A DNA stretch of 53,478 bases from Octopus bimaculoides (GCF_001194135.2 NC_068984.1:76290417-76343894), one strand, 5' to 3'; positions 8,295-45,607 are shown, numbered from the stretch's first letter. Notes: generated by a model from the letters alone, not told the origin. Translations and numbers: made by a program.

Positions 8295-8760
8295 ATTGTG
8301 GGAGCTAGGTCTGGACCATATGCTGGTTCCTGGAGTTTATTCCAGGTCATTTGAGCTGTATGAGGTCTTGCATTGTCTCACTGCAGAAAAGCTCTCTTTC
8401 TCTTAACCAATGCTGGATATTTTCGCCACAGAATGGCATACATCCACTCCAGCTTAACCAATGTTTGCACATGTTACAATTGCAAAAAAATATTTCCTTT
8501 AGATTATTACTTGTTCCAATCCATGACTCACTGCCTGTGAGTCATGGATTAAGATTCTTCACCTGGAAGGACAAGAACTGGTATTAGTATGAGATCAAAG
8601 AACTGGCAGAAAGGTGGCTTCAGATGGTGCAACACGGTGGCCTCTACTTTGAATGCCTGGCTGCTTTTGTTTGTAACTTGAGAAATAAAGCAAATAAGTT
8701 GCCAAAATATTGCAAAACTTTTGACTCTACCACAATTTATTTAAATAAATAGCAATACTA
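8295..8760. mobile_element. Rearranged mariner remnant with internal inversion
   Basis: Minus strand 8300-8470 reads KYPALVKRKRAFLQ*DNARPHTAQMTWNKLQEPAYGPDLAP. Plus strand 8548-8655 reads RFFTWKDKNWY*YEIKELAERWLQMVQHGGLYFE (mariner C-terminus), followed by a TIR-like aaaacttttgactctacc. Confidence 0.8.
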
Positions 8761-8798
8761 TTACTAAATATAACAAAAATTAATATTAATAACAATGT

Positions 8799-8856
<58 letters not shown>

Positions 8857-9044
8857 ATATATGTTTTAAATAACTACCATTGACTCTACCACAATCTATT
8901 TAATTATAGTTACCACTAAAAACAGACATAGCAACAAAATAAATTGTCATTTTTCATAGACTTTTTATTTTCCAAATTAAAGCATAGCTTAAATTTCAGA
9001 CTCCATTAGAAATTAATTGAATAATAATTCATCTCTTTTCACAG

Positions 9045-9137
9045 TTTGAATTATAAAGAAAAGAATAATTTAATTAGTTTTGTTTCATCTTTTGTTAGTT
9101 TGTCTTTTGTAGTTTTTTTTTTAGTTGAACAACAGAA
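9045..9137 (+). CDS. Candidate upstream exon of the NEF1-like gene
   Basis: Acceptor atctcttttcacag, donor AGAA|gtatgt; 93 nt, phase 2 to 2, compatible with 18949. Translation (x)LNYKEKNNLISFVSSFVSLSFVVFFLVEQQ(K). LNYK resembles recalled NEF1 DSLNVK and spacing to the conserved W is within about 2 aa. Weakness: T-rich low complexity with an internal poly-T run. Confidence 0.35.
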
Positions 9138-10593
9138 GTATGTTTCTTATGATGATTTTTTAATATTTTTTCTTTTCTTTTTAACTTTTTCAGATGTGTC
9201 ATGGTGTTTGTTTTTACATTTTTCATGTGTCATATCCTAGCTATTTATTCAATATTTCCATTAATATGGTAAGTTTTACTTTTTTTTACTTGTTATTTTA
9301 ATTTTGCTTAATTAATACATAAACAAATATATATATTTTCCAAAAGGTATGTGTGTGTGTATGTATGCTTGTATAAGTGTTCGTGTATGTATGCTTACGG
9401 TGCATGTGTGCTGTGTGATATATATACTATCTTTATCATTTATCTTTTGCTTGTTTCTGTCATTGGACTGTGGCTATGCTGGAGTACCATCTTCAAGGGG
9501 TTAGACAAACATATTGATCCCAGTACTTTTTGTTTTAAGTTTGGTACTTATTCAAGCAGTTTTGTTTGCCAAACTGCTAAATTATAAGGACAGAAACAAA
9601 CTAACACCAGTTGTCAAGTGGTGGTGGGAGATATGCACACACACTCACACACATTTTTTTATGCTCTTATTTCAGTCATTAGACTGTATCCACACACACA
9701 CATGCACAATGGGCTTTCTGGCTAGCAAATTCATTTGCAAGGCATTTGTTGACTAGGAGTTTTTGTATAAGACATTTGCCCAAAGTGCCACATGGTGGGA
9801 CTGAACTTGATATCTTATAGTCGCAAAGCAAGCTTTTTAACCACAGAGCAATATGTATGTGTACGCAAGCACAGTTGTGTGGTTGAGAGATCCTATTGAG
9901 ATGAGTCTTCAGTACAAATAGAGTTTCTGTTTCACTTACATTTACTTTTCTCTTTTGCAATCTCTGGTCATTATCCAAAGGACATGTATAAACACCAAAA
10001 ATATGAAAGATGTGGCTTCCAATGAGGAATGAGTCAAATTGTGACAATTCAGTCAACCCATGCTAGCACAGAAAGTAGATGTCATTCTTGATCCTACACC
10101 CTGACATTCTTGACTCTGCACTCTGACATTCTTGATTCATGCCTCTATACTCATGACTCAGCACCTTGATATTGTCAACAATCCATGTAAGACCTAGTTC
10201 CGATGTAGCACTCTATTGACAAACATTTTAATGGGCACATGAAATAAGAGGTAGATGCTGTTTCAACTATACTTTGGCAAACTCAAGTGGTTTTGAGCAG
10301 CTGAACTTGATGAGTTAGAATCTACACATACTACAACAGGCTGCAACACATTACTTAGTACCCTTACATGTTTATGAGCTTAATTCTTATCAAATCTGTT
10401 GCCTGTGTGTTTCAATTAATTATAAAAATTTTTAGAATTTGCAAAGGTTTAGTAAAATAACTGATATTGTAATTATCAAGCTGGTGTTTTGTAATGTAAC
10501 TTAACAGAAATATTCTTACATAAATTAATGATGTGTGGTTTTAATTTCACTATGAACATTTTAAAACAGATTTTGTTGTGTCTGGGGAGAGTC

Positions 10594-10719
10594 ATACTGC
10601 CTTAATATCTAACACACTCACCAGTTCAATTTCCACTCGTTTATTTTGGAAAAGAAAAAGTATAAATAATAGATGAGTGTAAATTGAACCGGTGAGTGTG
10701 TTAGATATTAAGGCAGTAT
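10594..10719. repeat. Near-perfect hairpin, about 52 bp arms
   Basis: atactgccttaatatctaacacactcaccagttcaatttccactc pairs with gagtgtaaattgaaccggtgagtgtgttagatattaaggcagtat, with a loop of about 22 nt. Confidence 0.85.
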
Positions 10720-10795
10720 TTTAAAACAAGTTTGCTATTACTAGAATAATATAACAAGAGTCAGTTTCAAGTAAGTTGGTTTATCAAAAAGCTCT

Positions 10796-11236
10796 TTAAC
10801 CCTTTTGATACAAACCCACCTGGACTGCACATAGTCATGTGGTACAAACTTTAGTTTAAAGTTATCTATAGTAAAGCTTTCCATTAAAATTGCATGCTAG
10901 ATTATATTCCAAATACCAGCTTAACCCTTCAGCATTCAGATTATTTTGTGAAATGTAATGCTTATTTATTCACATTTAAAAAATTTAATAATGTATTAGT
11001 TTGTAGTTTCAAGATTTCAAAAATGTGATTGTTTATCTTCTAGAATGACATTACAAGGTAAGTGTGAGAGGCCAGATCTGACCAGTTTGAACATAAAATA
11101 GGCAGAATATTTGGGCTGGATGTGGCTGGTTTAAATGCTACAGTGTTAATAATGACAAAGTTATTTTCATTAATTTTGAAATTAACTGAAATGAAGACAT
11201 TGTATTTCAGCTGAAATATGGTTGCAAAAAGGCTAA
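10796..11236. mobile_element. piggyBac-like MITE containing a second, nested piggyBac-like MITE (10921-11149)
   Basis: Outer element begins TTAAcccttttgatac. The inner element TTAAcccttcagcatt...aatgctacagtgTTAA sits at the outer element's internal cagcTTAAtaatgac site, with TTAA duplicated. Confidence 0.7.
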
Positions 11237-12796
11237 TGACTTGAAACTTCATTTTGTTTTGCTCTGTGTATGTGTATATACAGGTAACCTGTATCCTGGT
11301 TAAAGTGTTGGTAATATACGCATGTAGCCATCTAGTTGATAATAGCTGAAACTATTGTAGTAGTGATGGAAGAAGCAAAGGTAGTGATTTATTCCTCATC
11401 AGAAGTCAAAGAGTTAGAGAGTGTTAATGAAATACAATTTTCTTGGATTAGTCTAGTCAGAGTAACTTTCCTGTGAATTCAATTTATGATAGTTATGAGG
11501 TATATCTTAATTAAGTAGAATAATATTTCCTTTCACTTTGGTATAGGGTGTGGTGGAGTGAGAAAAACGGATGTAAGACTTGGATAGTGATGAAATTATT
11601 TCCTTCATTACAATTAGCATTAGCATTTAATTCTGGCCTTGTTGACATGAGACTGTTGATAATAGGAAAACCTATCATAAATCATACAGGAAGGGTTATT
11701 TTTCTTAGTTTTATCATATCTGAAATGAATATTTTCAATGCATCTGATAATATTAACTGTCTTATGTATGGGTGCTTAATTAAAGTTTAGATAACATGTA
11801 TTTTATGGATTTTTCTTCTTTTTTCAGTTTTGAAATTATTAAAAATAATTTTATTGAGTACTGGGTTAAACTAGTGTGTGTGTGTGTGTGTCTACATATA
11901 TATTCTTTTACTTGTTTCAGTCATTTGACTGCAGCCATGCTGGAGCACTGATATATATATATATATACTTATCATTATAATCTAATGTCCACTATTCCAT
12001 GTATGCATGAGTTAGGCAGAATTTGTTAAGACTGACTTTTTTATGGTTGGATGCCCTTCCTTTCCCAGCAGGATCCTTCTATCTACTACATATTACTAAT
12101 ATTTTATTTAAACAACCGAAGAGAAATAACCCATGCCACCTGCAGACTTTAGCAAAGAGATCAATATTTGATTCTCACGATCAGCCAATCCAATTCTGCA
12201 TTTCACTACTCACAGTTTTGAACTGCTAAACATTATTATTGCACTTCCTTAATTTGAATCTTAAACATTAAAGACTTCATTCATACATTTCTATACATAC
12301 ATACTTTTTTGAATGCCTATTACTCCGATAATTCTGCACTTTTACAGTTACACTTTTTCCATGATGGTAGATAAATTTTTTTATTCCACAACGTATTTGT
12401 AGTGGCTTCATGCAGGCATAGTGTGGATTCCATCCTTGATTGCCAAATTTCAATTAACACTTCAATGGTGCTTTTCTCACGGTAAAACAATAGTTTTTCT
12501 GTGAATGGCAGCAGTTATACATTTCCCAGATGCCTTCGCTAAGCAGAATAAATGTCTTTGCCTCTCACCAACCTCCGACAATCTTTCTTGCCAACCTCCA
12601 AAGACCTCTCTTACCAACCTCCAACAATTTCTCCCTCCTCCAGCTGACAGTTTTTTGTACTTTATCGTGACGGAAAATACACCTTTTGTGGCAGTTATAA
12701 CGAAATTGCTTTCTTATAGCAGAGTAATAAGGCATTTCAATAGAACATCTTTACTCCCTAGGAATTACCAGGTACACCAGCTAGTATATACATAAA

Positions 12797-12855
12797 TATA
12801 TGTGTGTGTGTGTGTAATACACACACACACATGCATACATTCATACATACATATA

Positions 12856-12931
<76 letters not shown>

Positions 12932-12967
12932 CACATATATGCATGCATTCATACATATATATACATG

Positions 12968-13010
<43 letters not shown>
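12797..13010. repeat. Compound microsatellite (TG)n/(TA)n/(CA)n
   Basis: Direct reading. Similar SSRs at 8806-8854, 18097-18160, 23125-23222 (ATT)n, 26527-26579, 40740-40804 (ATCT)n, 44260-44345, 51055-51110 and 52100-52190. Confidence 0.95.
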
Positions 13011-13011
<1 letters not shown>

Positions 13012-15414
13012 AAAGTTGGGTGTGGTTACCGAGGCACATTTATGCATTACAAACAAAACAAACCATTGGTGCAAATTACCCAGTCAAGGAAGAAAAAGAA
13101 ATAGAAAAATGTGATCCTGTAACCACACCCGACTCGATATATGTATAAGTTCTAGATAATTCAAGTTCTTTCAACAAATTACTTTTATATGTAATTTTGT
13201 GAGTCCAAGTTGACATATGTCATTCCAAAAGCACTTGGAGAGTAATCAATAGTTGCATATTATTGTATAATATGGCAAGATTGATGAGATCGAATTCAAA
13301 TGAAGCAATTGTAAATCTTCATATTAAAAAGACTTGCTCACTCCATTCCACTACTTTGTAATTATGAAATACTCTATAAATATTTATAGATTTCAGACAT
13401 TTGTTTGACACAACATACAATCTCCAGATTACTGTCTTGTCTGATAGCCAATACCCATTGATGTGCTTAATATGCTAAACTCCAGGGATGTACCTCTACT
13501 TTGAAAAGGTACAGCCCTGTCAAGTATTGATTTTGTGTCAGTGTGGATGCCACTAAATGCACTCATGATACAAAATGTGTGTGTTAAATTGCATGACAGA
13601 TTAAATCTACCACTCAACTTGACCATGGCAGAATTTGAACTCAGAATGCAAAGAGCCAAAAGAAGTATCACAAGGTATCTTGTCATTTTTACAGTTCCAT
13701 CAAACCACTGTCCTGAAAGGTAATTTTTTTTATCACCTTTCCTCTCAAGAAAAATGATGAAATGCAAAGTTGGCAGGACAAGATTTGAACTCAGAGTGTA
13801 GAGAATCAAAATAATATCTCTAGGCATTTTGTCTAATGGTCTACCAATTTGCCAGTTGTACTAAAGTGTTGATGTTTAAATCAAAAACTCCTTCAAAATC
13901 TTGTTACATTTTCAATGGTATCATGAGATTTCTGTTGGTAAATATATCTATATATAAATAAGCCAACAAGGGAGCTTTTGACCCACTAGAAATAGCGACC
14001 AAATTTTCCTCAATTCACATCCTAGCAAAAATAATGATTTATTTTTTCTAGCTTATCTTCACATTTTGATAATGACGGTATCTATGGATTATCATCATCT
14101 TATTAGTTAATAGTTACATTTAAATAATTTAAGTAATATGTTTGATAATGGAAATATTACATTCTGGCCCTCCATACTGAAAGTTGTGCTAAACATTTAA
14201 TATATTATTGCTACCATAAACTATAACATTATTATAGTGATCTTACTTCTTCACTGCACATCAGTTAACTTGGACAATAGATACAACTAACTTACTTCTG
14301 GTCATGCCATCCCAAATAAGATAACACACTTAACTGTGAAAATATGGGTTAGTGCTTGAGTTCTTATGTATGATGTACACTCCACTCTTAATATTTAGGT
14401 TTAAAAATCTAGAAAAAATGCATTGATAAATGTAAATGCATAAAGAGCTTATACTGACCAACACCAAGCACTTCAGCAACTGAAAAATAGTGTTCCACAA
14501 GAAAGTGGAGTATTGGAACCAGATATATTATATTATGTAGTGGAACACTAGAAAGTAAATCCCTTCAAAGTAATTTCCAAGATTCAAAGTAACTATATTT
14601 AAAGGGAGAATATCTTTACCCTTTTATGTTAAAAAAAAGTTCTTTAAGTTTTAAAAAAGAAAAATTTCAAAAATAAACCATTCTGTATTATCAGGATAAA
14701 AGTTGCAGTTGAAGATTGGTCTTTGTCACAATGCTATTTATTCACAACGGTCATTAAGTTAGTATCATGTTTAGTCCAAGGAACATTACACATTTAATTA
14801 TAAGTAATTTATGTGGTGAAGGAAAGACAGTTTTAGCTCATTAACAATTATCATTTTAATCATTCTGCCAATTTTACCACTCTGAGCATGTTTCAGTCTT
14901 ATTAGAACTCCTCAGCAAAACATCAATTTCATTGTTCTTGCTGAAATAGAACTGGGAGATTTGAGAAACAGATGTTCAATATTGTACACCAAACACACTC
15001 CCTTTTTAAATCCTCTGAGTTTAATTTTATACCTATCCCTCCACAGTAACACAATTCTCATCATTACTTCATCAAGTTCGCTGAAGTTGATTCTATACTT
15101 AAGAGGTCTAGCAAGACCAAAACATGTCTAGAATTATTTCCCGTTCTTGTTGAAATAATTAAAGTAATATTAATCATTGAATTCATATTAAGTTTTCCTC
15201 ACAGTATAACTATTTCTAATTAGATTTTTTTTTGTTACTCATTGTGTTAAATATGTAACACTAAGTTAACTGTTGCTTTTAATGCAGATGGCATCTCTGA
15301 ATAATTAGTCACATGGTGCAGTTTTGATTACTTGCAATAAAATTACTTTTGAAAAGTATTTTATTTTTCTAATTTCCTTAGGACTTGTGTCATAGCATCC
15401 CATTTTGTACATTG

Positions 15415-15816
15415 TTTACTCTTTACTTGTTTCAGTCTTTTGACTGTGGCCATGCTGGAGCACTGCCTTTAGTCGAGCAAATCGACCCCAGGACTTATTC
15501 TTTGGAAGTATAGTACTTATTCTATCGGTCTCTTTTGCCGAACCGCTAAGTGACGGGGACATAAACACACCAGCATCGGTTGTCAAGCGATGTTGGGGGG
15601 ACAAACACAGACATACAAACACATACACACATACATATATATATACATATATACGACAGGCTTCTTTCAGTTTCCATCTACCAAATGCACTCACAAGGCT
15701 TTGGTCGGCCCGAGGCTATAGTAGAAGACACTTGCCCAAGATGCCACGCAGTGGGACTGAACCCAGGACCATGTGGTTGGTAAGCAAGCTACTTACCACA
15801 CAGCCACTCCTACGCC
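15415..15816 (-). mobile_element. Young, full-length tRNA-type composite SINE (family A)
   Basis: Head ggcgtaggagtggctgtgtggtaag...gggttcagtcccactgcgtggca (A/B-box-like), central (TA/TG) microsatellite, tail ...ctccagcatggccacagtcaaaagactgaaacaagtaaag. Dozens of decayed copies on both strands across the window. Confidence 0.85.
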
Positions 15817-18094
15817 TATATTTTTTCTGATTTCACTTCATCTATAAATACTTAACACAGTGGAACCTGTATATGATTGCTTGATCTGAATGAAATAGTA
15901 ACCAAAACTTCTTGAAATAATGAAAACATATTTTTAACTTTATCAATGAAGTAATATGTTATAAAACCAGATATCATCATATAAAACAAATCAGATACAG
16001 AGCAAGGTTAACAAGCAAAGTATATGCTGGTTTTGAACATTCTTTTAAACTATATTGTATCATGAAGAGTCATATGAAAATAGAATCTTTTAAAATTTCT
16101 TCCCATTGTCAGAATTTTTTCAAATTTCCTACACTGGAGTAGTTATACATGATGATGGAATTCACATTCATTTTCACTAGAAATCAATTAAAAAAAAAGT
16201 TATAGGCTTTTAAAGTTATGTAATTTTAACTAGTCAGAAGTCTCCATTGCTGATATAGTGGAAGTCTCAATTATCTGTTTCCATGGGAACAGCATGAAAA
16301 CTATCACTCTTCCTTTTAGGACAGCCATATTCTTTTAAACTATAGATTCTGTCATGAAGAGTCGTATGAAAATATTCAAAGACTTTATGGCATGATCTAT
16401 TCCAATGAAAAATTATCAGTCTTTGAAGAATGATTTGATAAAAAACGACACTAAGGCTGGAGGTGCTGTTTATTTTCTAGGATCTACCAACCAGTTCATG
16501 GAGGTTAGGAAAAGATTCAACAAAAGAAAGACTCAACTGTTCTTTAGTTATGCTTTTGTTTCTTAACTTACATAAGTCATATTATATATACTTTTCTTGG
16601 TTTGTCCTGACTTGCCAGCTTTAAATTAAATAGACATATAACACATTAAGCAGGCACTGACATAGCTGTGTGATCAGAAAGCTTGGTTTTCAACCACATA
16701 GTTTCAGGTTCAGTCCTACTGCATGGCAGTAACCCTTCTACTGTAACCCTGTGGTTGATGTTGGGAAAGGCATCCAGCAGTAGAAACCATGCCAAAGCAG
16801 ACACATAGAACGTTGTCAAACTGTTCAACCTATGTCAGCATGGAAAAAGGACATTAAATGATGATGATGATGGGTGGGTGAGTAACTGTGTGTGTATCTT
16901 TGTGTTTGTACCCCACCACCACTTGATATCTGGTGTTGGTTTGTTTGCATTCCCATAGCTTGATGGTTCAGCAAAGTGTCTGATAAAATAAGTGTCAGAC
17001 TTAACAACAACAAAAGTAAGTTGTGGGGTTGATTTGTTCAACTTAAACTCTTCAAGATGGTGCCCCAGTATGGTTGCAATTTGTTGACTAAGATAGAAGA
17101 TCATGAAGATAGTTTCAAAAATAAATTTGGACTTGGATTATTTGTTAAATTGGTGTTGCTGCTACTACTACTACTGCTACTACTGCAGGTGTTATCTTAT
17201 TCCTCAAATTACATCCACTCAGAACAAGTGACCTCCATTGACCAGAGATATAAAAGCCATTGAACACTCCAGTAAGCAGGTCAGGTCATTGCTGTTAGAA
17301 ATGTAAATTATAGTTGACCTTCAGCCTGAAGGGACAAATTTGGGATTTTCTCTCTTTATATCATTGTTGCCATTCATTTTTCTTGTTTCATTTTGTTTTT
17401 GTTCTTTTCTTTATAAGTAGTACAAAAGTTACTGTTAACTTACTGTGTGTGTGTGTTATTTGGAAGAAGAAGTAACATTGACTGTAGTGAACTGGAGTAA
17501 GGAGGATGGAGAAAGAATGAGAGTATGTATATCTGTATGTGTATAAAAAATGTGGAAGCAAGTGTTTATATATGCTTCTGTATGAAAGAAGAAAGGGAAC
17601 TACATAAGGGGCTGAATGTTTGTGCATAAAAGAAAGAAACTGTAGGAGAAAGTGAGAAAAATAAAGTACTAGAGTGTATGTGTGTATTGAAAAGAGGATA
17701 TATTTTTAAATCATTTCTATTGTATGCACAAGGGCTGAAGCTTCGTTGGTGACTTATGTTAAGGACTCCAAAAAGCAAAGTCGACTTTTAAAATGAAAAT
17801 AAACTAAGGCTTTTCTTTTTATAATTGGAAGGGGTTTGTACCTAGTCAAAGGTTATTTTCAAAATCATCTTTATGATCTGTTTAGAGTTTGATAATGATC
17901 CTGTAATTATTTTATAGAAATGTTACATATAGATGCAGGCATGGCTGTGTGGTAAGAAGTTTGCTTCCCAAGTACAGAGTTCTGGGTTCAGTCCCATGTT
18001 TGACATCTTGAGCAAATGTCTTCTACTATAGTCCTAGGCTAACCAAAACCTTGTAAGTGGATTCTGTTGACAGAAACTGAATGAAGACCGACCC

Positions 18095-18142
<48 letters not shown>

Positions 18143-18948
18143 GTATATATATATCTATATGTTTATGTTTACCCACTGCACCTCACCACTTGACAATTGA
18201 TTTGTTCGTTTATGTCCCTGTAACCTAGAGGTTCAGCAAAAGAGATAGATAAGTACCAGGTTTTAAAAAATTAGGTACTGGGGTCAATTCATTTAACTAA
18301 AAAAAAACCTTCAGAGTGGTGCCCCTGCATGGCTGCAGTACAATGGCGGAAACAAGTAAAAGATTAAAAAAAAATTGAAGGAGTCTTTTTCAGGCATTAA
18401 GATGTTATTGCAGATTGAGTGATTACATAGAGGCTCACTTGTTGGCTCATAGTGTAAGTGCTCTTGTATGAAATTAAATCAGACAGAACCAATAAATGGA
18501 ATGATGTGTGTCAATGATATAACTTGCAAGAAATTTAGCTGTCACAGGCTCTCAGAGAGACTATTGACACCAATGTTCCTTTTGAACAGTTGCAATTTGA
18601 GCCTCAGTAAAAACATAGACAAGGTTGAAATCCAGAGAATCAGCATTCTTAGTAGGAAGAACTTAGGGTTAGTGCAGGGCTACTAGTGGTGGACACTATA
18701 TGGGTGGTGGGAGGAGGAGAGAGGAGTGGATTTTTGCGAATACCTGAAGAAAATGGCAGGAGAATAGCCAGTTCTGAGAAGCAGTGTCCACCATAACTGC
18801 TATGATAGCAGCTACAGTGGGTGGATGTATATTTAGAACATACACTCAAATTATGTTTTGAAAATGTTTGATTTGATTATAATTTGCCACTCATGTTACT
18901 TAGTCCTCTTTGTACAGTATTTCTGATGATTTCTCTTTGCTTTTGCAG

Positions 18949-19066
18949 GTTGTCTTGGTTAAATGTTGCTCTCATCCTTATTGCCAACTTCTTTATATTA
19001 TTGATTGGTGGCTGGATTATATTACAGTTCTCTGCATTTCGCTGTGAAGAATTTGAACTATGTTTG
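18949..19066 (+). CDS. Internal coding exon of a multi-pass membrane protein, NEF1 (No Exine Formation 1)-like
   Basis: Strong acceptor (atttctctttgcttttgcag) and donor TTG|gtaagt; 118 nt, phase 2 to 0. Only one open frame: (x)LSWLNVALILIANFFILLIGGWIILQFSAFRCEEFELCL, a TM helix. LIGxWxxLQF matches recalled plant NEF1 FLIGCWTSLQF (from memory, not searched). Confidence 0.85.
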
Positions 19067-20904
19067 GTAAGTTGCTCTTTCTCTTTAAGTTCCCTCTTGA
19101 CATCAATGAATCTTAACTCTTTTGTGACTATATTTCTGTTGAAATACATTGTCTTCATTTCAGTTAATTTTGAAAATAATGAAAACTTCTGTAAAATAAT
19201 TTTGACATTATCAAGCTGGTGCTTGAAACAAATTTAAATGAAAATTTGATGGAAGGTTTTAATTTATGTGTCATAGAACCAAAGGCAATGTCAACTAGTT
19301 TGGTATAGAGAGTTCTATTCATGATCGAAATTACTTTTGCAGGTAAGCCCTTCATGAGGCAGCTTCTGGTTTGCCAGCTCCTATCAAACTGTCCTACTTG
19401 TGCCAGCATGGAAAATGGACATTAAACGATGATGGTGGTGGCAGTGGCAGCAGCAGTGGTGGTGAAGAAGAAACATCTGTCAAATCACAAAATAGTTCTT
19501 CCACACTTCAAATCTGCTAGGAATGACTATTTTAGACAACCTCTCCTGAAAGAGGGCTTATAATCATGTTTTGACCTGTAAAAAAATAGCAGTCAAATCT
19601 TCATCAAATTACATCCTGCCATCTTAACAGAATAGATTTAACTCTTCTACACATTATCTCAGTAAAATTTCTGAAAACAAGCCTGACTGTGTGGTAAGAA
19701 TTTTGCTTCTCAACCACTTGGTTCTGGATTCAGTCTCACTACATGACATCTTGAGTAAGTGTCATCTGTCATAGTCCTGTACCACCCTAAACCTTACAAG
19801 TGGATCTGGTAGACAGAAATTGAAAGAAACCTATCAACTGTTTTAAATGATAGCTGTAACTCCTACTAAATGTGTTGAGAGCCCTTTTCCTTCATTTGTC
19901 CATTCACTCATGTGTGTGTGTGTGTTACAGTTTCCTTACTGTGACATCACATGATAGATAGTTGTAAATGAATGTTATCATCATGCAAGAAGAGTCTGTC
20001 ATTCATCTTCCATGAAAATATGTCTCATCATGAGAGAGATATTACCTTACTTGGAAATAACTAATGGTTGACAACAGGAAGGGCATCTAGCTACAGAAAA
20101 CCTTCATCAAAAAAGAAATTTCTGTCTGATTAATGCCAGCTTGGAAAAGCGGCTATTAAAATGGGGATGATGATCCAAGTAGATACTCTACACAATTACT
20201 TTAATCAAATCATACTGTCTTCAAATATGAGTGATGAGCTCCTGGATGTGCAAGAGTTGGAAAAGGGACTGTCAAAGTTGCAAATGAAATGCTTTTAATC
20301 TTGGGTCTGTATGCTTAGTCAGGGCTAAACTGAAGCTAAACAACAGCAGCTGCTGGAAATTTTACGCTCTCTTTATTTTTAAAATATCAAAAACATATTG
20401 CTTTGTCAGCAGTTGTAGACACTTTTAGATCATAAGGTAAAAAACATGTCTCCCATGTTTCTGGTACTAAGGAGTGTGTTGCTGGCTCATTTTTGTTGTT
20501 ATTTGTTTGGTTTTGTTGGAGGGGTGGCATCTATACTGTTGGCAGTCTGGTGAGATCAGTATGGTTGATGTTCAAGAGTAGAGTAACAACCACAGGAAAA
20601 ATAGATAGACAGAAAGGGTGTGAAGATAGACTTTCTGGAAAAGAAGGATTGTGTATAGGTTAGTGTGGGGCTTTGAAGGTAAGATAAGATAAAGATGACT
20701 GTGGGAAGCAAGAGATAAGTAAGTCTGGGAGGAGATAGTTTGAAACTGAAGGCATTGTAGTAAGGCAGAAAGTGGAGACAATACTTCTGTAGTCCAGAAG
20801 TAGTAGTAGTAGTGTTTCTGATGGTCATCTTCTGGAAGCTGACTTGGATGGTTGTGTACATGTGTAAGAGTAGTAGCACAGTCCTAGATACAAGGGTAAA
20901 TTTA

Positions 20905-21905
20905 TAGTTTCACACCAGACTCGATTTTGGTACTAAATAATTTTTTTCCCCACAGTTTTTTTGGATGCAATCATCTTAGTTAACTTTGTAAGCTGTTTGA
21001 AATGCATTCTTTCCACGGAAAACAGATGGGGTGGGGGTGAAGTGGAACCTCGGATATTCCCTTTTCCAACCCTGTCTCCTGCATTTTTTCATTGCAGTTG
21101 TCTTAATTGACCTCAAGTGTGGGAAATGCATTTTGTCCATAGAAAACAGAGACTGTGGGGGTGAGGCGGAACCTAGGGCATTTCTGTATATCTTCTATCT
21201 CCGGATTTGTGCTGGAATCGATCCTTTACTGGCAATCTGGGAGGGGTGTATATAATTTTGCTACCTCAATAAAAAATTGGTGCAGCAATTTTTTTTGTTT
21301 TCTGTAGCAGAGATAAATAAATACCTGGCCAGGTATTGGTGTAGACAGTTTAAATGAATACCCGGCCTTTTCATCTATTTCTTTAANNNNNNNNNNNNNN
21401 NNNNNNNNNNNNNNNNNNNNNNNNNNNNNNNNNNNNNNNNNNNNNNNNNNNNNNNNNNNNNNNNNNNNNNNNNNNNNNNNNNNNNNNNNNNNNNNNNNNN
21501 NNNNNNNNNNNNNNNNNNNNNNNNNNNNNNNNNNNNNNNNNNNNNNNNNNNNNNNNNNNNNNNNNNNNNNNNNNNNNNNNNNNNNNNNNNNNNNNACAAA
21601 GCGGCGTTTCCTAATCCGCTCAATTCCAGCAAACAACCAGACATAAACATTTTAATTAGAATATACAATCTGTAAATAGAATTAATAATTATATGTATGA
21701 GGTCAATTAAGATGATTGCAACCAAAAAAAACATGTGAGACAAGGTCGGGAAGGGGAATTTCTGAGGTTCCGCCCCACCCCCTCCATTTTCTGCGGAAAC
21801 AATGCATTTCCGACTGCTTACGAGATCAACTAAGATGATTGCACCCACAAAAATTGCGGGAAAAAAATATTATTTAGTACCGAAATCAAGTCTGATGTGA
21901 AACTA
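20905..21905. mobile_element. Non-autonomous hAT-like element with about 210 bp TIRs and internal subrepeats, spanning an N-gap
   Basis: Starts TAGTTTCAC and ends GTGAAACTA. 8 bp flanks TAAATTTA at 20897-20904 and 21906-21913. Arms 20905-21115 and 21695-21905 are inverted repeats. Confidence 0.7.
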
Positions 21906-23122
21906 TAAATTTATCAATGCAAGTGCAGTATTCAGCTTTTGTAATTTTAACATTGAAATTTACAAGTCATTTGTCTTTTGCTGTATCAATTATACTATCC
22001 ACAACTCTTTGTAATATATAATGATTGGTAATATAAAAGGAAAAGACCAGCCAGAATGTTTTCTGGAAGGTTGTGAGTAATTCTGCTGACCCTACCGCTT
22101 GACTGGGGCATATTTTATCCATTTCCAGCTTTTTGTGAAATTTGAACTGAGAAAGTAAAGACATCTGATGAAATTATATTCCCCTGCCAACATTCTACTT
22201 ATTTTCTCCTGTCTTTTACTTGTTTCAGTCATTGAACTGTGGCTATGCTGGGGCACTGCCTTTAGGGTTATAATCAGACAAATTGATCCCAGTACTTATT
22301 TTGTTTTAGGCATGGTACTTATTCTAATGGTCTCTTTTGCTGAATCACTAAGTTATGCAGGGATGTAAACAAACCAATATTGGTTGTCAAGCAATAGAAG
22401 GAACATACACACACACACACACAACAGGCTTTCACACAGTTTCCATTTACGAAATTCATTTATAAGGCATTAGTCAGTCCAGGGCTTTAGTAGAAAGCAC
22501 TTACCCTATGTACCATATGGTGGAACTGAACCCAAAACCATGTGACTGCAAAGTCAAAGTCAGCTTAATTAACCACACAGCTATACCTGCATCCAATTCT
22601 GCCATCTACAGTAATATTAATGATACAAGAAAAAATGTCAATAGAAATATGATCATAATGATTATATTAAAAATAACAAAACAATAAAACTACAATAACG
22701 AACTGAAGGTCATGAATAACAATATATCAACTCATGCGCCATCCTTGAAAAAACAAAAAAACGGAAGAAAAGAACAAGAATGGAAATGTCATTTGTAACA
22801 TTTTAATGGGGTAGTATCATATCTGGTCTATATAATCAATAGCCAATCTTTATGGGTCTTCACAGAACCCCTAATTTAATCCTGCAGGAATCTACATCAC
22901 ATGCAAACTTAGAATGGTATTATTTCCAAAAGTTCAACATAATATTGGAAATGTCAACACAATACCTTTCAGGAATTCCAAATGGACCTCATAGGCTCAG
23001 AGTTTGCATGTATTTTTATGATTTTTATTTGTAAAGCTGTAGAGTGTTTTAAAGCTAGGAAACAAATAATGGGTTGGTTGTAATAGAGTAATATATATAC
23101 ATGTTTATGTGTGTTATTGTTA

Positions 23123-23177
<55 letters not shown>

Positions 23178-23922
23178 CATTATTATTATCATTATTATCA
23201 TTATCATTTTATAATTATTATTAATCAGCAGAAGTTACAAAATGACTCAAAGGAGTTTTGCTCATGACACATATTCTACTAGACCTGTATGTATGTATGT
23301 ATGTATGTATGTGTGTGTGTGTGTGTGTGTGCATGCATGCATGTATATAGAGAGAGAGATACATACATACATACATACATACATACATACATACACACAC
23401 ACACGCATATTCCAGCATGGAAAACAGATGTTAAATGAAAACGATGATGATGGTGTATGTGTGTGTGTGTGTGTAAAATTATAGTATGTTTATGTGCTTG
23501 TACCTCTGCACATGTGTGTGTTTGCATTGCTGCTTGAAATGTGAGTTATATAGGCCTGTATCAATGGCATCACAAGAAGAGAACATTTAGGTGGTTGCTT
23601 AACCAGATATAAGATAAAATAGCAGGCAAATCTCCCTCAGAATCACATCCTACATCCTTAAAAAAAAACCTAAGGGCACATTAATGTAGTTTTAGATACA
23701 CTATATTTGGAAAACAAAATGGGATGTTCACAGCTGTTTTGCCTTTGATCATAAATCTGCTTAATCAGTGTTAATCTCCAAGTTGAAGAACAACCACAAA
23801 AGCATATAATGATTATTCAAGGAAGTACTATTCAAGAATACATCTCTTATTTCCTTTATCTTTTACTTGTCTCAGTCATTAGACTATGGCCATGCTGGGG
23901 TACTACCTTGAAGGGTTTATTC

Positions 23923-24124
23923 TAGAGGTTCTCAAATGGGGTCCGTATGATCCTTGTGGGTCCATATAAGAACTTGTTAAAATTGATGTGCAGTAAATTG
24001 CTTATACTTCTACAAAACAAAATGTTTTAATAACTTTTTTTTTATGCAATGGCCGTGAAGGTTCACCCAAATAAAATAGGAATCAAAGGGGTCCATAGGT
24101 AAAAAAAATGGTTGAGAACCTCTG
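23923..24124. mobile_element. hAT/Charlie-like MITE
   Basis: Terminal inverted repeats tagaggttctcaa / ttgagaacctctg, about 200 bp, interrupting a SINE tail. An 8 bp TSD is not cleanly preserved. Confidence 0.6.
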
Positions 24125-24282
24125 ATTCAGTCAGACAAATTGACCCCAGTACATTTTTTAATGTCTGGTACTTGATCTTTTGGTCTCTTTTGATGAATCA
24201 CTAAGTTTATGGGAACATAAGCAAACTGTTTGTAAAGCAGTTTTGGAGAACAGGCACAAAGGCACATATTGGCTTCCATATT

Positions 24283-25558
24283 TTGGGTCATCCCATAAAT
24301 AATGCAGTTGTTTTTATACTTGTTTTATATTTCAAAATTAAGATAAACAAAGTTCTTTTTTAATCTAAAATATACTTCCCTTCATTTTCTACAATGCTCT
24401 TCCATCTATCTGGTAGACTTTAAAGGCATCCCACTTCCAAAAATTCATGTGTCCATGACAAAAATACTCCTCCAGAATACTCGACTACAGAATTCGTATT
24501 TTTTGATCCAAATGATTTTGAAAACTGCGAAATAAATGATAATTAGATGAGGCAATGTCTGGTGAATATGGTGGGTGAGGCATCATTTTCCATTCAAACT
24601 GCTCCAGTCTTTGGGATGGCACCCTAGCTGTATGTGGCCAAGCATTATCCTGATGAAAGAACACATTTCGGCTTGAAATTAAAGATGGTTGTCTTTATTC
24701 TAGCGCTGAGTTAAGCCATTCCAGCTCCTCACAGTAGATCTCCTTTCTTATTGTTTGGTTTGGGCTTAAAAGTTCAAAGTGGTCTAAACCTTTCATATCC
24801 CACCAAACTGATAACAACACCTTGCATGGGTGAAGACTTTCTTTAGCCTGGAGAGCTGGTGTTTCTCCTTTTCCTGCCCTCTGTCTTTGGCACTTGACAT
24901 TTTTAAAGAGAACCCATTTCTCGTCATTATTCAGTCCAAAAAAAGGTTCATTCATGCGACATGACAGCAAAAGAGAGCACACATTCACTCTCTGCACATG
25001 ATTAGACTCGGAAAGTTTGCGAGGAACACATTGACTCAATTTGCTGACTCTTCTGATGGCAGGCAGGTGTCGATGAATGATTGAATGACCAAATCCAAGC
25101 TTCTCTGCTAGTTCTTCAATAGTTACAATAGGATTTTGTTCCACCAGGGTTTGCAGGATGTCCTTGTCGAGCGCTACAGATCTTCCAGTACAACGCTTGT
25201 CTTCTGGGCTGTAGTTTCCAGCTCAGAATTTCTGGAACTACTGTTGACACTAGCTTATGCTTATTGTCTGATCTTCATATACTGCATTAATATTCCTCAC
25301 ACTTTCCATTGCATCATTGCCTTTATTGAACTCATAAAGCAAAAAATGCCAAATATGCCCCTTTGTCACTTCCATTATAGCTTTGAAAAATTAACTGTTA
25401 CAATCGAACTGCACTCTTCAAAACTTGCACAAAGAATAAGGTAAGCTAAAATTACTATCTGTTTTTATAGCAAATTGATGCAGATAGTTTATCTCATCCC
25501 CACTCTGACTTTTAATTCATGCAATTGAAAAAACTGCATTACTTATGGGATGACCCAA
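24283..25558 (-). mobile_element. Near full-length inactivated mariner (DD34D) transposon, about 1.28 kb
   Basis: TIRs ttgggtcatcccataa(a/g)taatgcagtt at both ends, TA at 25559-25560. Transposase remnants on minus strand from ATG at 25375: MEVTKGHI..LYEF, VPRKL (WVP motif decayed), NDEKW, LHPCKVLLSVWWD, DNAWPH, PPYSPDIASSNY. Several stops; third catalytic Asp appears as Asn. Inserted within a SINE. Confidence 0.93.
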
Positions 25559-25830
25559 TACAAAGGGCTTCCAAACAGTTCTCATCTACCAAATTCAAAA
25601 GCAAGGTCCTTAACAACACAGCCATACCTGTGCCTATTAATAATAAATTCTGTATATTTGAGGTTTACAAAAAATGTTTTAAAATAGGGAAGCCAACATC
25701 ACTTTGAGTATCAAATATAATTACTCTGAAATGTTTGAGCCAGTATGGTAGGTAGCCTCTATGTGATTGCTTGACCAACCAGCATTGCCAATATAAATGT
25801 TCGTTGGTTGATTTCTATAGTCATGCTGTA

Positions 25831-25872
<42 letters not shown>

Positions 25873-26520
25873 TGATGGATGCAGAGAGAAAGAAAGAAGT
25901 GCAAGACGAGAGCACATACTAGGCTTGGTAGTAGGCAGTGAGTAATGGATCCCCCTCACACATACACACAGAGTAAGAGAGACAGAATCATAGAAACAGA
26001 AGAGGAGGAGAGGGAGTAAATGATTGAGTAGTAATGAGAGAAGTTCAATTTTACCAGTACATTTTTGATGGAGTAGATTGTGACTATGTTAATGAAATTT
26101 TAAAGAATTAAACAAATGTTTATTGCAAATATACAAATGAGAAATTTGTTTTATTTTAAGGTAATAAATATTTTTCTTTTGAAAATTAGTATTCATTTCA
26201 TCATTTTGCATAAGCACCAAGAGATTGAAAAGATATGATTTAACAATCATAAATATTGTATGTATGCCAAAATTCCTGTGTTTATGTGTGTATGTCAGTT
26301 TTAAATGGTGGAATTTGAAGTAAATAAGGTCATAAATAATAGTGTGTACATACTGAGCTAAAAAAAAAACCTTTGGACTAAAAAAAGTTGAGGGTTGCCT
26401 GTAAACATGACAAACTTTCTACCATTGTACTAAAGCAATCCTTCAAATTTCTCTATCCATTTTAGAAGTTTTCTTATTAGTAAGAATTGTAGATCTGTTT
26501 ATGTGCATATAGATAATGTG

Positions 26521-26582
<62 letters not shown>

Positions 26583-26590
26583 GTAATCCC

Positions 26591-26707
26591 ACGAGGTCGA
26601 TTTTGCCTTTCATCTTTTCGGGGTCGATGTAATCGACTTAATCCCTTTATCTTTCCTTGTTTGTCCCCTCTATGTTTAGCCCCTTGTAGGCAATAAAGAA
26701 ATAAGAA
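26591..26707 (+). mobile_element. SINE family C 3' fragment
   Basis: gaggtcgattttgcctttcatcttttcggggtcgat...aataaagaaataagaaa. Related copies at ~46340-46500 (+) and ~13600-13870 (-). Confidence 0.65.
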
Positions 26708-27060
26708 ATGTGGTAACAAAAGGGTTAAATCCTTAACAGTCACTCTAAGTTTTAGAGTTAACAAATTATATAGCCACATAGTATTTCACAGTAATTTCTG
26801 CTTTCATCTACATTCAGCCCCTATGACTCCCTCACCTAAATTATACTGTGAACAGTACTACCAATCACTGAACTCTTTAATATGCTTCAACTACCTGCAA
26901 GGGTACACCCTTGAATAAAGCTACATTGACATATCTACCCTGGATGAATTTATAATGCAAGTGAATGAACGGGATGCAATTAAATGCTATATCTTAGGAC
27001 ATCCATGCAGCAAAAGCATATGCTGGACTGAGATTTAATGCGAATGTATTTTTTATGCCT

Positions 27061-27117
<57 letters not shown>

Positions 27118-28187
27118 NNNNNNNNNNNNNNNNNNNNNNNNNNNNNNNNNNNNNNNNNNNNNNNNNNNNNNNNNNNNNNNNNNNNNNNNNNNNNNNNNNN
27201 NNNNNNNNNNNNNNNNNNNNNNNNNNNNNNNNNNNNNNNNNNNNNNNNNNNNNNNNNNNNNNNNNNNNNNNNNNNNNNNNNNNNNNNNNNNNNNNNNNNN
27301 NNNNNNNNNNNNNNNNNNNNNNNNNNNNNNNNNNNNNNNNNNNNNNNNNNNNNNNNNNNNNNNNNNATATATATATATATATATATATATATAATGATTG
27401 AGATGTTGCCATTGAAGGAACAACAAATGCAAAAGAAAATAAGTCATCATCAGATTTGATGGACAACTAAGAGAGCAAATACATTATTTTTACAGTTTGT
27501 TTTTATTCATTGTCTTACCATCTCTTTCTTTCTCCTTTTCTTTCCTTCCCATTTTGCTCATTTTCTTCTCAGTCAATGACTGATCTACATGATTATTGTT
27601 ATTGTGTAAATGAGAATAAGATCTTCTTCAGCTCTGTAATGATGCCATAATTGATATTATAGTTGTTTTCTTACTTACTTACTCCCACCCCCACACCCAC
27701 CATCTGCTATTATTCCTTCCAAATAGATTAACTGATAAATCTAAGACTACATACAAATACCATCACTGGCTTTTGGCTTGTAAGAAATACCAAGCAGACA
27801 TTTTTTTAAAATCCCTTACCACTATTTATAGCACATCTAAACTCAAAGTTTAATCCTTTCCTTCAAAGACTTATTCACTGAATAATCCAAATTCTGGCTC
27901 TTCTACATTTGTTACAGTTTATAGCTTCTCCACTGATAGCTATCTGTATTATCTAAATAGACAAAACAGATTGATAGATTGATAGACTGATTACTAGATA
28001 ACTAGACAAGATTGCTGGATAAATTGACAGATAGATAAGATATACTGGAGTTATCTAAGAAGTGCATTTAGCAGTACAGTGTTCCTAGTTCAATTCCACT
28101 GGGCAGGACCATGTGCAAGAGTCTTCTGTCATAGCCTCAAGTTAATCAATGTTGTTTGAGTGAAATTTGATTGATGTGTAAAGACAT

Positions 28188-28485
28188 TCGAGCGAGATCG
28201 TTGCCAGTGCCGCCGAACTGGCTCCTGTGCAGGTGGCATGTAAAATACACCATTTTGAGCATGGCCGTTGCCAGTACCGCCTGACTGGCCTTCGTGCGGG
28301 TGGCACGTAAAAGCACCCACTACACTCTCGGAGTGGTTGACGTTAGGAAGGGCATCCAGCTGTAGAAGCTCTGCCAAATCCGATTGGAGCCTGGTGTAGC
28401 CATCTGGTTCACCAGTCCTCAGTCAAATCGTCCAACCCATGCTAGCATGGAAAGCGGACATTGAACGACGATGATGATGATTATG
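28188..28485 (+). mobile_element. SINE family B copy, 5'-truncated, about one VNTR unit
   Basis: High identity to 210-505. A further tail-only copy lies at 43656-43818. Confidence 0.8.
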
Positions 28486-29269
28486 ATGAAAATGATTGAA
28501 TCCTGTCATGTATGTATATGTACACCTATATGTGAGTATGTGAGAATGCAAGTATATTTCTTTTATTATTGTATTGATTTGGAGAAGAGGCTTCAACTAC
28601 AAACCGCACAACTATCCAAGATCATTGAGATCAATACGGTTAACGTTTCTCCTCTTGTATATTTGAAAATGCATGTTTGTGTAGCAATACTGGTACTGCA
28701 TGTGTATTGTATATTGGTGTAAATCAAATGGATTGAACAAAAATCACTTATGGTGTTTAGACTCTGAGAAAGTAAACTAAGTCATTCAATAGAGATCGAT
28801 AGAAAATAACAGTAGTAGACTATGTACTTGGGTCAGTGTATATGACTAGAAGTTTGGATGCTGGTTCCACAGCATAGCTGCAGTTCAGTGGCTGAAACCA
28901 TTGATAATTTAGAAGTAATATTTTTAATGGTTTAGGGCAAGAGGAAGCGGTAATTCCCATGACCCTCTTAGGTCCTCAAACCCTGGAAAGATATTGGTTT
29001 CAAATTTTGGCACAAGGCCATCAATTTTGGGGGAGGGGTAACTCAATTACATTAACCCTAGTGCTCAACTGGTACTTGTATTATCGACCCTGAACAGATG
29101 AATTTGAATCAGAATGTAAAGCTGGACAAAATACCATTGAGCATTTTGCCTGGTGTGCTAATAATTCTGCTAGATCACAGTCCCAGACACTGAAAAGACA
29201 CTAATATCATGAATGTTCAATTTAAATATCTGTAATTATGCAGGAGCATATGGTCAGTAGAGAGAGAAT

Positions 29270-29560
29270 TCCAGAGAGGTGGGGCTCTGGAAAGAAAGGG
29301 TTGCGAAAATAGTTAGTGTGGGGTACTAGGACAGGTGGAAGGAGGCAGTCAAAAGGACAAGAAGAGGAGGAGAGGTTGGTTGTTTCAGCCTGAGGTGGTA
29401 TGAAATTAGCTAGTTAAGAGGAGTGGAAGCTGTTGGAGGCTGTTATATTCATGGTTGATAATAGAACATGCAGAAAGGAAGAAGAGGCAGAGATTGTAAC
29501 ATGTTAGTGAGTTAGTAGTTTCCAACCTGTCAGCTGGCCTACTTTTGGATGTGATCTCTG
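29270..29560 (-). mobile_element. CR1-like LINE 3' fragment
   Basis: Minus strand shows decayed CR1 C-terminal-like text (PHTNYFRNPFFP..LWNSL). Similar fragments at ~18650-18850, ~20600-20790 (ORF text YTQSFFSR) and ~33240-33560. Confidence 0.55.
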
Positions 29561-29672
29561 ATGCCTGTGTATGTTTGTAAAATTAGCAGAGAAATTAGTA
29601 ATTTATTAAGTGATTTAATGAGTTGGATTTTATGATATTCTTTTTCATTGAAACCAATGTCTTTTATTTCAG

Positions 29673-29788
29673 ACTATTGAAAAGCTGCTATTTACTGCAT
29701 TCCCTGCTTTGTCTGTGGCATTATGGATATGGGCAACAATGTCTGTTGTAAAACTAAGCCTACTGCCTTATCTTACAATAGCCTTTGG
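29673..29788 (+). CDS. Next internal coding exon of the NEF1-like membrane protein
   Basis: Acceptor tcttttatttcag, donor TTTGG|gtaagc; 116 nt, phase 0 to 2, in phase with the 18949-19066 exon. Translation TIEKLLFTAFPALSVALWIWATMSVVKLSLLPYLTIAF(G) continues the ungapped match to recalled NEF1 ALERLLFACVPFTASSFFAWATISAVG. Confidence 0.85.
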
Positions 29789-30223
29789 GTAAGCAATTCC
29801 CTTGTTGAAATACATTTATCATTTACTATCTTTTATGTTTGTGTTAACATGCAAAAATGGTTGTAAAAAAAAAACATTCACTTGCTATAATAGATTGTTT
29901 TTTCTATTTATTTACTTTTTGTTTTATAATTTATTCACTGTATAGACCAAAGGTTTACTAATGCCATCAATTTTTACAACATAATACAAGGCTTTAGAAA
30001 ATCCATATTAATGTTTGAACATCTTGAAAAACATGTTATTCATAATTTTGTTATACACAAGTTTGATTGCTAAAACATAAGTATGATTAATGAAACACAA
30101 TAAGCATTGAAAACAGACATTTATTCATCCATTTTATGTCTGTTTTCAATGTTAGTATGAGTTGGATGAGTATATATTACTGAGACATCATTTTACAACT
30201 GATGACTGAAGAGGATATCTATG

Positions 30224-36068: not shown

Positions 36069-37439
36069 TTAATATTTCTTCATGGCTGGACATATTTCCA
36101 CATGACTGGAAATGAATGGCACCGTTTTTATCACCACAATACTTATTTTACAACTATCATGCAATATGAAGACAAAGACGTATGTCTTTGCCCTTTTTCT
36201 GTCTGGTGAGGTCACAGTTACAATCAAAACTATTTTGGCCATAACTGTCCTGTCTTTTTGTATATGTAGAACTATGTTAAAGTAGAGCATTGAGACACAT
36301 TTTCAGGTATTTATTTTGTATTGTGTCCCCCCCCCCATTTGTTTAGATCCTGACATGAGAGATATATAATTAGTAAAATATAATGTTTCTATAACCTGTA
36401 AATTTGATTTGATTCAGCATGAAACAGCAGGGGAACTTCTCTATGGTCATTTGACCTGCTGGGAAAAGCAGCCAAATCTACCTCCAAGAAGACACTGGAT
36501 GCTGTTGTTTTGCATTCTTTGTATATAGGAAAAAGATGTAGGGGTCAAAGCTGAAATGTATTTGATCATTTGTCTGCTCACTCAAGACTGATCTGAGGTT
36601 AAATGATTATAAATTATTTGAGGATCAAAAGATAGTTAAGCAGTATGTTTTCTTGGTTTGAGTGTATGGTTTAATGCTTAACTCCAGTTTCTTGATATGA
36701 TGTGAGACAAATGGGAAATGAATTTCCTTGTGGATAGTGCAGTAATTGAAATTATATCTGTGTAAACATTCTTATTTACCTACTTAATCCTTTTGTTACC
36801 ATATTTTTGCTGAAGTACACTGCCTTTGTTTTAGTAAATTTTGAAAATAATGAAGAATTTAGTAAAATAACTTTGTCATTATTAATCTGTTTATTTTGGA
36901 ACATAAATTAAATCTACAATAAAAAATGCTTGCAATGAATTTGAACTTAAGGTCTTTCACTTGGAAGCCTCAAATCATTACCACCTGGTCATTTCAAATC
37001 TGCTCTGTGAAAATAACTAGAAATAAATATGTAGTTTGGAAAAAATAAATAAAACAATATTTTTCAATAACTGATATTATTTTCATGTTACCTGGTAGTA
37101 CAAGAGACAATTGTGGACATGTTTCTGTATAATATTGACTTTATCCAAGAAGCATAGCTTTCGTTATACTTGCTAAAATATTGGTGAATTTATCACCTAA
37201 TAAATATACAAGGTGTCCTGAGCAACAGGGGTTCAGGAATTTTACGGAGTATAGAGTTACCCCTTAGTTACTATTACGCTCAACTCTGCTGACATGGGGT
37301 GGTAGTACCTGTCAAGGGCTCCAGCTGTGGTCACATAGAAGAAGGTGATCTTGTGGCTAAGACACACTAGATTCAGTGGAGGGCTGGCCCTATAGACTTG
37401 TGTCACTTAAGCCTACAAGTGTGTGTACATGCTATGATA

Positions 37440-37625
37440 GGCGTGGGAGTGGCTGTGTGGTAAGTAGCTTGCTTACCAACCACATGGTTCCGGGTTCAGT
37501 CCCACTGCGTGGCATCTTGGGCAAGTGTCTTCTACTATAGCCTTGGGCCGACCAAAGCCTTTTGAGTGGATTTGGTAGACGGAAACTGAAAGAAGCCTGT
37601 TGTATATATGTATATATATATATAT
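37440..37625 (+). mobile_element. Young SINE family A 5' half (runs into an N-gap)
   Basis: Near-identical to the head of the 15415-15816 copy, opposite orientation. Confidence 0.85.
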
Positions 37626-45377: not shown

Positions 45378-45607
45378 TTAATCCTTTCATTACCATATTT
45401 CTGTTGAGATTCTCTGTGTTTCTTTCAATTAATTTTAAATATAACAAGGAGTTTAGTAAAATAACTTAGTTATCATTAAGCTAGTGTTAGGAACATAAAT
45501 GGTGACTAAGGTTTGGTGGAAGATTTCAATTTAGAACTTTTGAAAACAAGATATTTATACTACAGAGCCAGAGACGGTTTCAGCCGGGTTGGTATCGAAA
45601 GGTTTAA
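45378..45607. mobile_element. piggyBac-like MITE with TTAA target duplication
   Basis: TTAA-tcctttcattacc ... ggtatcgaaagg(t)-TTAA. Related copies or fragments at ~10796-11236, ~19113-19318, ~34260-34630, ~36786-36960 and ~46560-46700. Confidence 0.75.

Follow-up and report, generated by a model that had tools for sequence, protein, structure and literature searches.

Coding Exons at the Locus

A stretch of 53,478 nucleotides (nt) from the Octopus bimaculoides genome (GCF_001194135.2, NC_068984.1:76290417-76343894), hereafter the window, harbors three short coding exons. These are very probably three consecutive internal exons of a cephalopod gene for a membrane protein homologous to NO EXINE FORMATION 1 (NEF1) of plants, with both identity and homology judged from sequence comparison. 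The locus is an unrecognised gene with short exons and 10-kilobase (kb) introns. Coordinates refer to the whole window, and the exon model lies on the + strand. The probable orthologue used for comparison is a cephalopod protein of approximately 930 residues from a different species (P0001 and its cluster), in which the exon junctions fall at contiguous residues.

Coding exon A (9194-9268; 75 nt; tttttcag/ATGTGT...ATATG/gtaagt) codes for (R)CVMVFVFTFFMCHILAIYSIFPLI and the two leading bases of a Trp codon. It was located by tblastn with residues 75-109 of P0001 and has the top splice score in a phase-constrained scan. Intron 1 (9269-18948; 9,680 nt) has GT...AG ends, contains interspersed repeats and microsatellites, and harbors no match to the family profile. 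Coding exon B (18949-19066; 118 nt; ttttgcag/GTTGTC...TGTTTG/gtaagt) codes for (W)LSWLNVALILIANFFILLIGGWIILQFSAFRCEEFELCL, carries the conserved N, GxW, and LQF residues of the family, and aligns with P0001 residues 110-147. Intron 2 (19067-29672) spans 10,606 nt as assembled and contains both assembly gaps as well as the remnant of a mariner-type transposase. Coding exon C (29673-29788; 116 nt; tatttcag/ACTATT...CTTTGG/gtaagc) codes for TIEKLLFTAFPALSVALWIWATMSVVKLSLLPYLTIAF and the GG of the following codon, carries the invariant E..LLF...P........W motif, and aligns with P0001 residues 149-187.

At the A/B junction, the TG that ends exon A and the G that begins exon B form TGG, the conserved Trp of PLIW/LSW. 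Exons B and C, joined and read from the second base (offset 1), give a 77-residue open frame, LSWLNVALILIANFFILLIGGWIILQFSAFRCEEFELCLTIEKLLFTAFPALSVALWIWATMSVVKLSLLPYLTIAF, while all three exons joined give a product of 102 residues. The original prediction for this DNA had described two exons 10,606 nt apart with splice signals and matching phase; the sites are canonical, the in-frame join is confirmed, and the 50-residue peptide quoted at the time is contained exactly in the joined B and C frame. That two-exon model holds for exons B and C, although it overlooked the upstream exon A at 9194-9268.

The two assembly gaps (21387-21595 and 27118-27366) both lie within intron 2 and are flanked by TA/CA microsatellites. 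No coding sequence is interrupted by an assembly gap; the gaps bear only on the true length of intron 2 and, in principle, on the scaffold join. The order, orientation, and frame of the exons across intron 2 are nevertheless supported, because the homologues cross the B/C junction gap-free and with no extra residue.

A family profile (A1), built from 16 animal members of the family, was run against every open stretch of the window in six frames (2,771 in total). Only three of them match, collinear and on the + strand, at 9156-9269 (E 7e-8), 18872-19234 (E 4e-11), and 29652-29789 (E 2e-11); all other stretches score E ~1 or worse. This result bears on one alternative, namely that there is no gene and that AT-rich intergenic or intronic DNA has produced open stretches and splice-like signals by chance. 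A crude + strand splice-site scan does give dozens of exon-like candidates in the window, and the region is marked by neither a standalone open reading frame (ORF) nor a Pfam domain. However, the profile selects just these three stretches, in phase with one another, the Trp codon divided between exons A and B restores a conserved residue, and the product aligns gap-free with cuttlefish proteins over 101 residues. Homologues occur in more than ten species and are therefore not artefacts. A chance origin is thus next to impossible.

Animal Homologues

Searched with HMMER against the whole of a set of 1.84 billion representative proteins, the 77-residue peptide gave 18 matches. The best (E 1.3e-25, 72% identity) covers query residues 1-76 and therefore extends across both exons. 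Full-length matches comprise 810-1130 residues, and their source names are "uncharacterized" or "hypothetical"; a member from Mactra antiquata bears a pleckstrin label that was apparently mis-transferred. Among cephalopods, the matches include the cuttlefish Acanthosepion pharaonis (CAE1158594.1, in the P0001 cluster), a partial and unnamed record. Further molluscan matches come from gastropods (Batillaria, Babylonia, Biomphalaria, Patella, Haliotis, and Plakobranchus) and bivalves (Pinctada and Mactra), and those from outside the molluscs from the brachiopod Lingula, the annelid Owenia, the crinoid Anneissia, and the octocoral Paramuricea. No vertebrate is found among the 18 matches of the 77-residue query, which is suggestive only. 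The family had been described beforehand as uncharacterised and patchily distributed, and its occurrence in molluscs, a brachiopod, an annelid, a crinoid, and an octocoral, all under unnamed records, bears this out.

The 102-residue product is 75-76% identical to the cuttlefish-cluster proteins over 101 residues with 0 gaps, 40-50% identical to the proteins of other molluscs, and about 39% identical to those of non-mollusc phyla. An identity of 75-76% is too low for members of one genus, and the window therefore stems from a cephalopod lineage other than that of the cuttlefish. The cuttlefish cluster also contains many Logan contigs of 3-4.5 kb with an uninterrupted ORF of 932 residues. These contigs appear to be transcripts, and the same junctions would therefore be spliced in relatives of the octopus.

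Two kinds of search gave no match. Pfam returned nothing for the 77-residue peptide, for seven homologues, or for all 16 members of the alignment. A word-index protein search with the 77-residue peptide was likewise empty; this is a false negative, as P0001, 72% identical, is present in the same collection.

Homology to Plant NEF1

A provisional full-length Arabidopsis NEF1 sequence, for which an exact look-up gave no record, served only as bait for plant DNA. All homology statistics were computed on the protein spliced from the recovered plant DNA and not on the bait. Against metagenome contigs of the Joint Genome Institute (JGI), the bait recovered two loci (L001 and L002) at 94-99% in aligned segments, six loci at 72%, and five partial loci at 59-76%. 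L001 and L002 are host plant DNA within the JGI metagenome assemblies. Spliced at canonical sites (3001-4221, 4376-4948, 5039-5257, and 5406-6764 of the contig), L001 yields a protein of 1123 residues.

The surroundings of the plant gene bear on its identity. On both L001 and L002, positions 1-3000 hold a GH3 family gene upstream of the NEF1-type gene on the same strand, and positions 7049-9313 hold a POT/PTR2 transporter gene downstream on the opposite strand. In Arabidopsis, At5g13390 (No Exine Formation 1) sits downstream of the GH3.13-16 cluster (PMC7789250). On account of this GH3 synteny, L001 is taken as the NEF1 gene of Arabidopsis or of a near Brassicaceae relative, an identification that is indirect.

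The 50-residue NEF1 segment given in the original prediction is present verbatim in the L001 protein. The count given with it, 18 ungapped identities over 50 residues, is correct when checked position by position against L001. A word-index search with this 50-mer found no match; it too is a false negative, since the 50-mer stands verbatim in plant DNA. In a BLASTP comparison of the window peptide with the L001 protein, 19 of 55 residues are identical without gaps (E 3e-7).

At full length, the similarity is far more extensive. The L001 protein reaches 140.2 bits with profile A1 in HMMER (E 6.5e-36, calculated for 1.8 billion library proteins), with a match in two collinear stretches that run from profile position 36 to 936 and from plant residue 48 to 1110. 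An hhalign comparison of A1 with an alignment of the real plant loci gives a probability of 100% and an E value of 2.3e-38 over 904 columns at 18% identity. Controls were made by shuffling the sequence within blocks of 20 residues, which keeps the hydrophobicity pattern, and 200 such controls score at most 3.9 bits. The earlier proposal of an animal NEF1 homologue encoded by spliced exons is accordingly supported by HMMER, by hhalign, and by a real plant gene. Its word "plastid" is inapplicable to the animal protein: plastids do not occur in animals, and nor does exine.

Conservation between the kingdoms extends to 33 columns, and 10 of them lie in the window exons: N114, W131, L134, Q135, F136, E151, L154, F155, P159, and W168 (cuttlefish numbering). 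The core motif N...GxWxxLQF...E..LLF...P........W, represented in the window peptide by IANFF, GGWIILQF, IEKLLFTAFP, and WIW, is kept throughout the comparison set of 16 animal and 4 plant sequences. The three exons of the window encode the best-conserved core of the family. The concentration of 10 of the 33 conserved columns in these exons explains why the resemblance could be spotted from so short a piece.

The gene could be real while its likeness to NEF1 reflects only generic transmembrane similarity, the protein being a member of a different membrane superfamily. In favor of this, the match at the level of the window covers few residues, which fall in hydrophobic sequence, the HMMER bias term is high (73 bits) for the full-length match, and the word-index search with the 50-mer was empty. 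Against this, the last observation is a false negative, and the similarity is collinear over ~900 columns. Block shuffling, which would preserve a generic hydrophobic signal, reduces the score from 140 to no more than 3.9 bits. The common motifs FxYNxR, LQF, E..LLF, SSFK, GN..T, and Q/N-D..LL are non-hydrophobic, and no other Pfam or PDB family is matched save for a weak match to LCI1. Generic similarity is therefore extremely improbable, and homology to NEF1 is the preferred reading.

A different question is how a gene related to NEF1 came to be in animals. Horizontal transfer from a plant or alga would fit a distribution that looks patchy, with plants and some marine invertebrates represented and no vertebrate, arthropod, or nematode among the 18 matches. 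However, the family occurs in Cnidaria, Echinodermata, and four lophotrochozoan phyla, and its full-length identity to plants is ~18%, in contrast to 39-50% among animal phyla, which is the pattern of old vertical descent. In addition, the animal gene, as seen in the window, has its own long spliceosomal introns. Transfer is thus very unlikely, and vertical descent of an ancient gene is favored.

Protein Architecture and a Possible Link to LCI1

The architecture of the protein was assessed on the orthologue P0001 and other members of the family rather than on the window peptide. A hydrophobicity scan of four members finds 24-34 hydrophobic segments, partly overlapping. The AlphaFold2 model, based on the 16-sequence alignment, is all-helical with 36 helical elements, a mean predicted local distance difference test score (pLDDT) of 75.8, and a predicted template modelling score (pTM) of 0.55. 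The 102 residues of the window correspond to helices 3-8 of this model. Judged from the cuttlefish orthologue, the full product is predicted to comprise ~930 residues and to be almost wholly membrane-embedded, with ~30 predicted helices. A separate model of the C-terminal region (214 residues) has a pLDDT of 84.5 and a pTM of 0.75. Foldseek matches to helical solenoids, to ND5 of complex I, and to 14-3-3 proteins were dismissed as noise.

The sole PDB sequence matched by the family profile is 6BHP (E 3.6e-4). This entry is LCI1, a plasma-membrane CO2 channel of Chlamydomonas (PMC8967839), which forms a homotrimer of four-helix subunits (PMC9614477). Profile positions 749-850 (P0001 about 735-840, outside the window) align with LCI1 residues 27-127. 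A sub-alignment of the C-terminal region, one plant sequence included, improves the match to E 3.3e-5 and 26.4 bits, and the LCI1 segment scores 22.7 bits compared with at most 10.3 in 1000 shuffles. On the other side, LCI1 is not detected by a plant-only profile, its match weakens slightly when a combined full-length profile is used, and its four-helix fold is not recovered, 6BHP lying outside the Foldseek top 50 for the C-terminal model. The two proteins also differ greatly in size, LCI1 being a four-helix protein of 200 residues and the family members highly polytopic proteins of ~930 residues. A relationship between the C-terminal region of the family and LCI1 may exist and is best treated as an unproven lead.

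Completeness of the Gene

Only part of the gene is visible. No exons for P0001 residues 1-84 or for residues 188 onward were detected in the window by tblastn or by the profile, and ab initio exon searches upstream and downstream yielded exon A alone. The portions absent from the readable window thus comprise ~85 N-terminal and ~745 C-terminal residues. Between 37626 and 42940, four large runs of N (435, 703, 819, and 498 nt) fall within 5.3 kb and have di- and tetranucleotide repeats at their borders. The next exon could sit hidden in these runs. Given that the introns measure ~10 kb and that N accounts for ~2.5 kb of the segment from 37.6 to 43 kb, the failure to detect neighboring exons is unsurprising.

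Several observations nonetheless weigh against the assignment of the locus to an intact NEF1-homologous gene. The visible codons number 102 of ~930, or ~11% of the coding sequence, and the next exon was not found in the 23.7 kb downstream, of which ~2.5 kb are N; the copy may be truncated or rearranged. The exon junctions at this locus rest on genomic DNA and on the proteins of relatives. With regard to the plant side, the provisional full-length NEF1 used as bait deviates by ~3% from L001, and the name NEF1 for L001 derives from synteny, from length, and from agreement with that sequence and with the 50-residue segment rather than from an annotated record. In structural comparison, Foldseek finds nothing significant in the PDB for the full model (best E 0.5) and no match at E <= 0.001 for the C-terminal model (best E 0.2). 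Internal repeats were not found by hhalign of six segments.

A further alternative is that the locus is a decaying or partial copy, either a pseudogene or a fragment split by misassembly. It would account for the exon or exons for residues 1-84 and the next downstream exon being undetected in the window, and both the heavily gapped 23.7 kb downstream and the error-prone nature of scaffold joins at microsatellites are compatible with it. In contrast, the reading frame is open in each of the three exons, their splice sites are canonical, and nearly all family-invariant residues are kept, the sole change being a conservative Y to F at the YP motif. Introns of ~10 kb also place the neighboring exons plausibly outside the window or in gaps. 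A decayed or partial copy is therefore very unlikely, and a gene that extends beyond the readable sequence is preferred.

Other Contents of the Window

Everything in the window outside these exons is intronic or intergenic. Its G+C content is low, about 27-39% in subwindows without long N runs, and it contains many microsatellites. No transfer RNA (tRNA) genes are found in it.

The transposase remnant of intron 2 is a 149-residue ORF on the - strand at 24695-25144. It is similar to Pfam Transposase_1 (E 6e-18), a partial DDE transposase of the mariner type, and represents the remnant of a transposon. All remaining long ORFs of the window were rejected as artefacts of microsatellites or N runs.

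Several dispersed repeat families that resemble short interspersed elements (SINEs) are present. The first, ~300 nt long and SINE-like, occurs at 9443-9840, 15495-15819, 22212-22542, 37437-37625 (inverted), 44508-44790, and 49533-49613. Its copies are found in both orientations with 62-95% identity, often beside microsatellites and assembly gaps, and ARAGORN detects no tRNA-like head in it. The second, ~250 nt long with a GAT-rich tail, occurs at 259-514, 28243-28497, 43657-43831, and 16801-16890 with 83-92% identity, one copy overlapping a 47-nt tandem repeat at 155-246. Another element is a 107-nt repeat without coding sequence, present at 19112-19218, 36783-36889, and 45377-45483 with 71-80% identity. 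Its first copy starts 46 nt 3' of the exon B donor.

Proposed Function

Several residues that are polar or charged and located on predicted helices are kept across kingdoms, namely E151, R288, R442, K464, N114, and N766 (cuttlefish numbering). Conservation of these residues would span more than a billion years. The protein is proposed to let a lipidic or small hydrophobic substrate cross the membrane, whether as a passive or secondary transporter, as a channel, or in the manner of a scramblase. Such a role is favored on the basis of the little soluble mass of the protein, the lack of a nucleotide-binding, energy-coupling, or known catalytic domain, the conserved polar residues, and the lipid and sterol-ester phenotype of nef1 plants. 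In the mutants, tapetal plastids contain less lipid and sterol ester, and the primexine is defective (PMC3220415, PMC12346373). Facilitated substrate movement of this kind, by whichever of these means, is put forward tentatively, as a possible function. An intramembrane enzyme, or a role in assembly or as a scaffold, would take up most of the remaining probability.

In animals, the protein would act in the endomembrane system or at the plasma membrane. The conserved activity would not be plastid-specific, because the animals that possess the protein have no plastids. Full-length homologues exist in animals that lack plastids as well as pollen, and the core activity of the family may therefore be a general membrane function.

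A broader hypothesis combines these elements. NEF1, rather than having arisen specifically for plastids or pollen, would represent a single branch of an ancient family of giant polytopic membrane proteins of eukaryotes. Marine invertebrates, from cnidarians through echinoderms and lophotrochozoans, would have retained this family, and vertebrates and ecdysozoans would have lost it. The C-terminal helices of the family would be distantly related to LCI1, and all members would act, in some non-plastid membrane, as conduits for lipids or small hydrophobic molecules. Taken as a whole, this hypothesis is speculative and rather unlikely to be correct. If true, it would overturn the reading of NEF1 as a plastid transporter, and LCI1 would gain its first relatives outside the green algae.

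Significance

On the alignments presented here, the family is neither plant-only nor tied to plastids. For twenty years, the literature has referred to NEF1 as a plant "plastid membrane transporter" of no known biochemistry, and the animal homologues open new experimental systems, including relatives in oyster, snail, and sea anemone. The gain is modest, as it consists of an interpretive link within a known, uncharacterised family and not of a new type of system. The animal proteins are already public and readily connected to NEF1 through profile methods, and family-level classifiers probably group them with it. In species related to the octopus, the protein is known only through partial or unnamed records.

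Comparison with NEF1

Published descriptions of NEF1 as a plastid membrane protein or a putative transporter (PMC3220415, PMC12346373) are not backed by biochemical proof. Within the literature that could be searched, "no exine formation" and At5g13390 appear for plants and green algae only. The plant protein (At5g13390, 1123 residues) is homologous to the animal family over essentially its whole length. However, there are several differences between the two. The identity amounts to only about 18%, and the plant protein is ~190 residues longer and harbors extra loops. The genes are also organized differently: the plant gene has 4 exons in ~3.8 kb, while the octopus locus has short exons separated by introns of ~10 kb. 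Both proteins nonetheless share the same all-helical, highly polytopic build without a known domain, and the motifs GxWxxLQF...E..LLF...P...W, SSFK, and GN..T...Q/N-D..LL are common to NEF1 and its animal counterparts.

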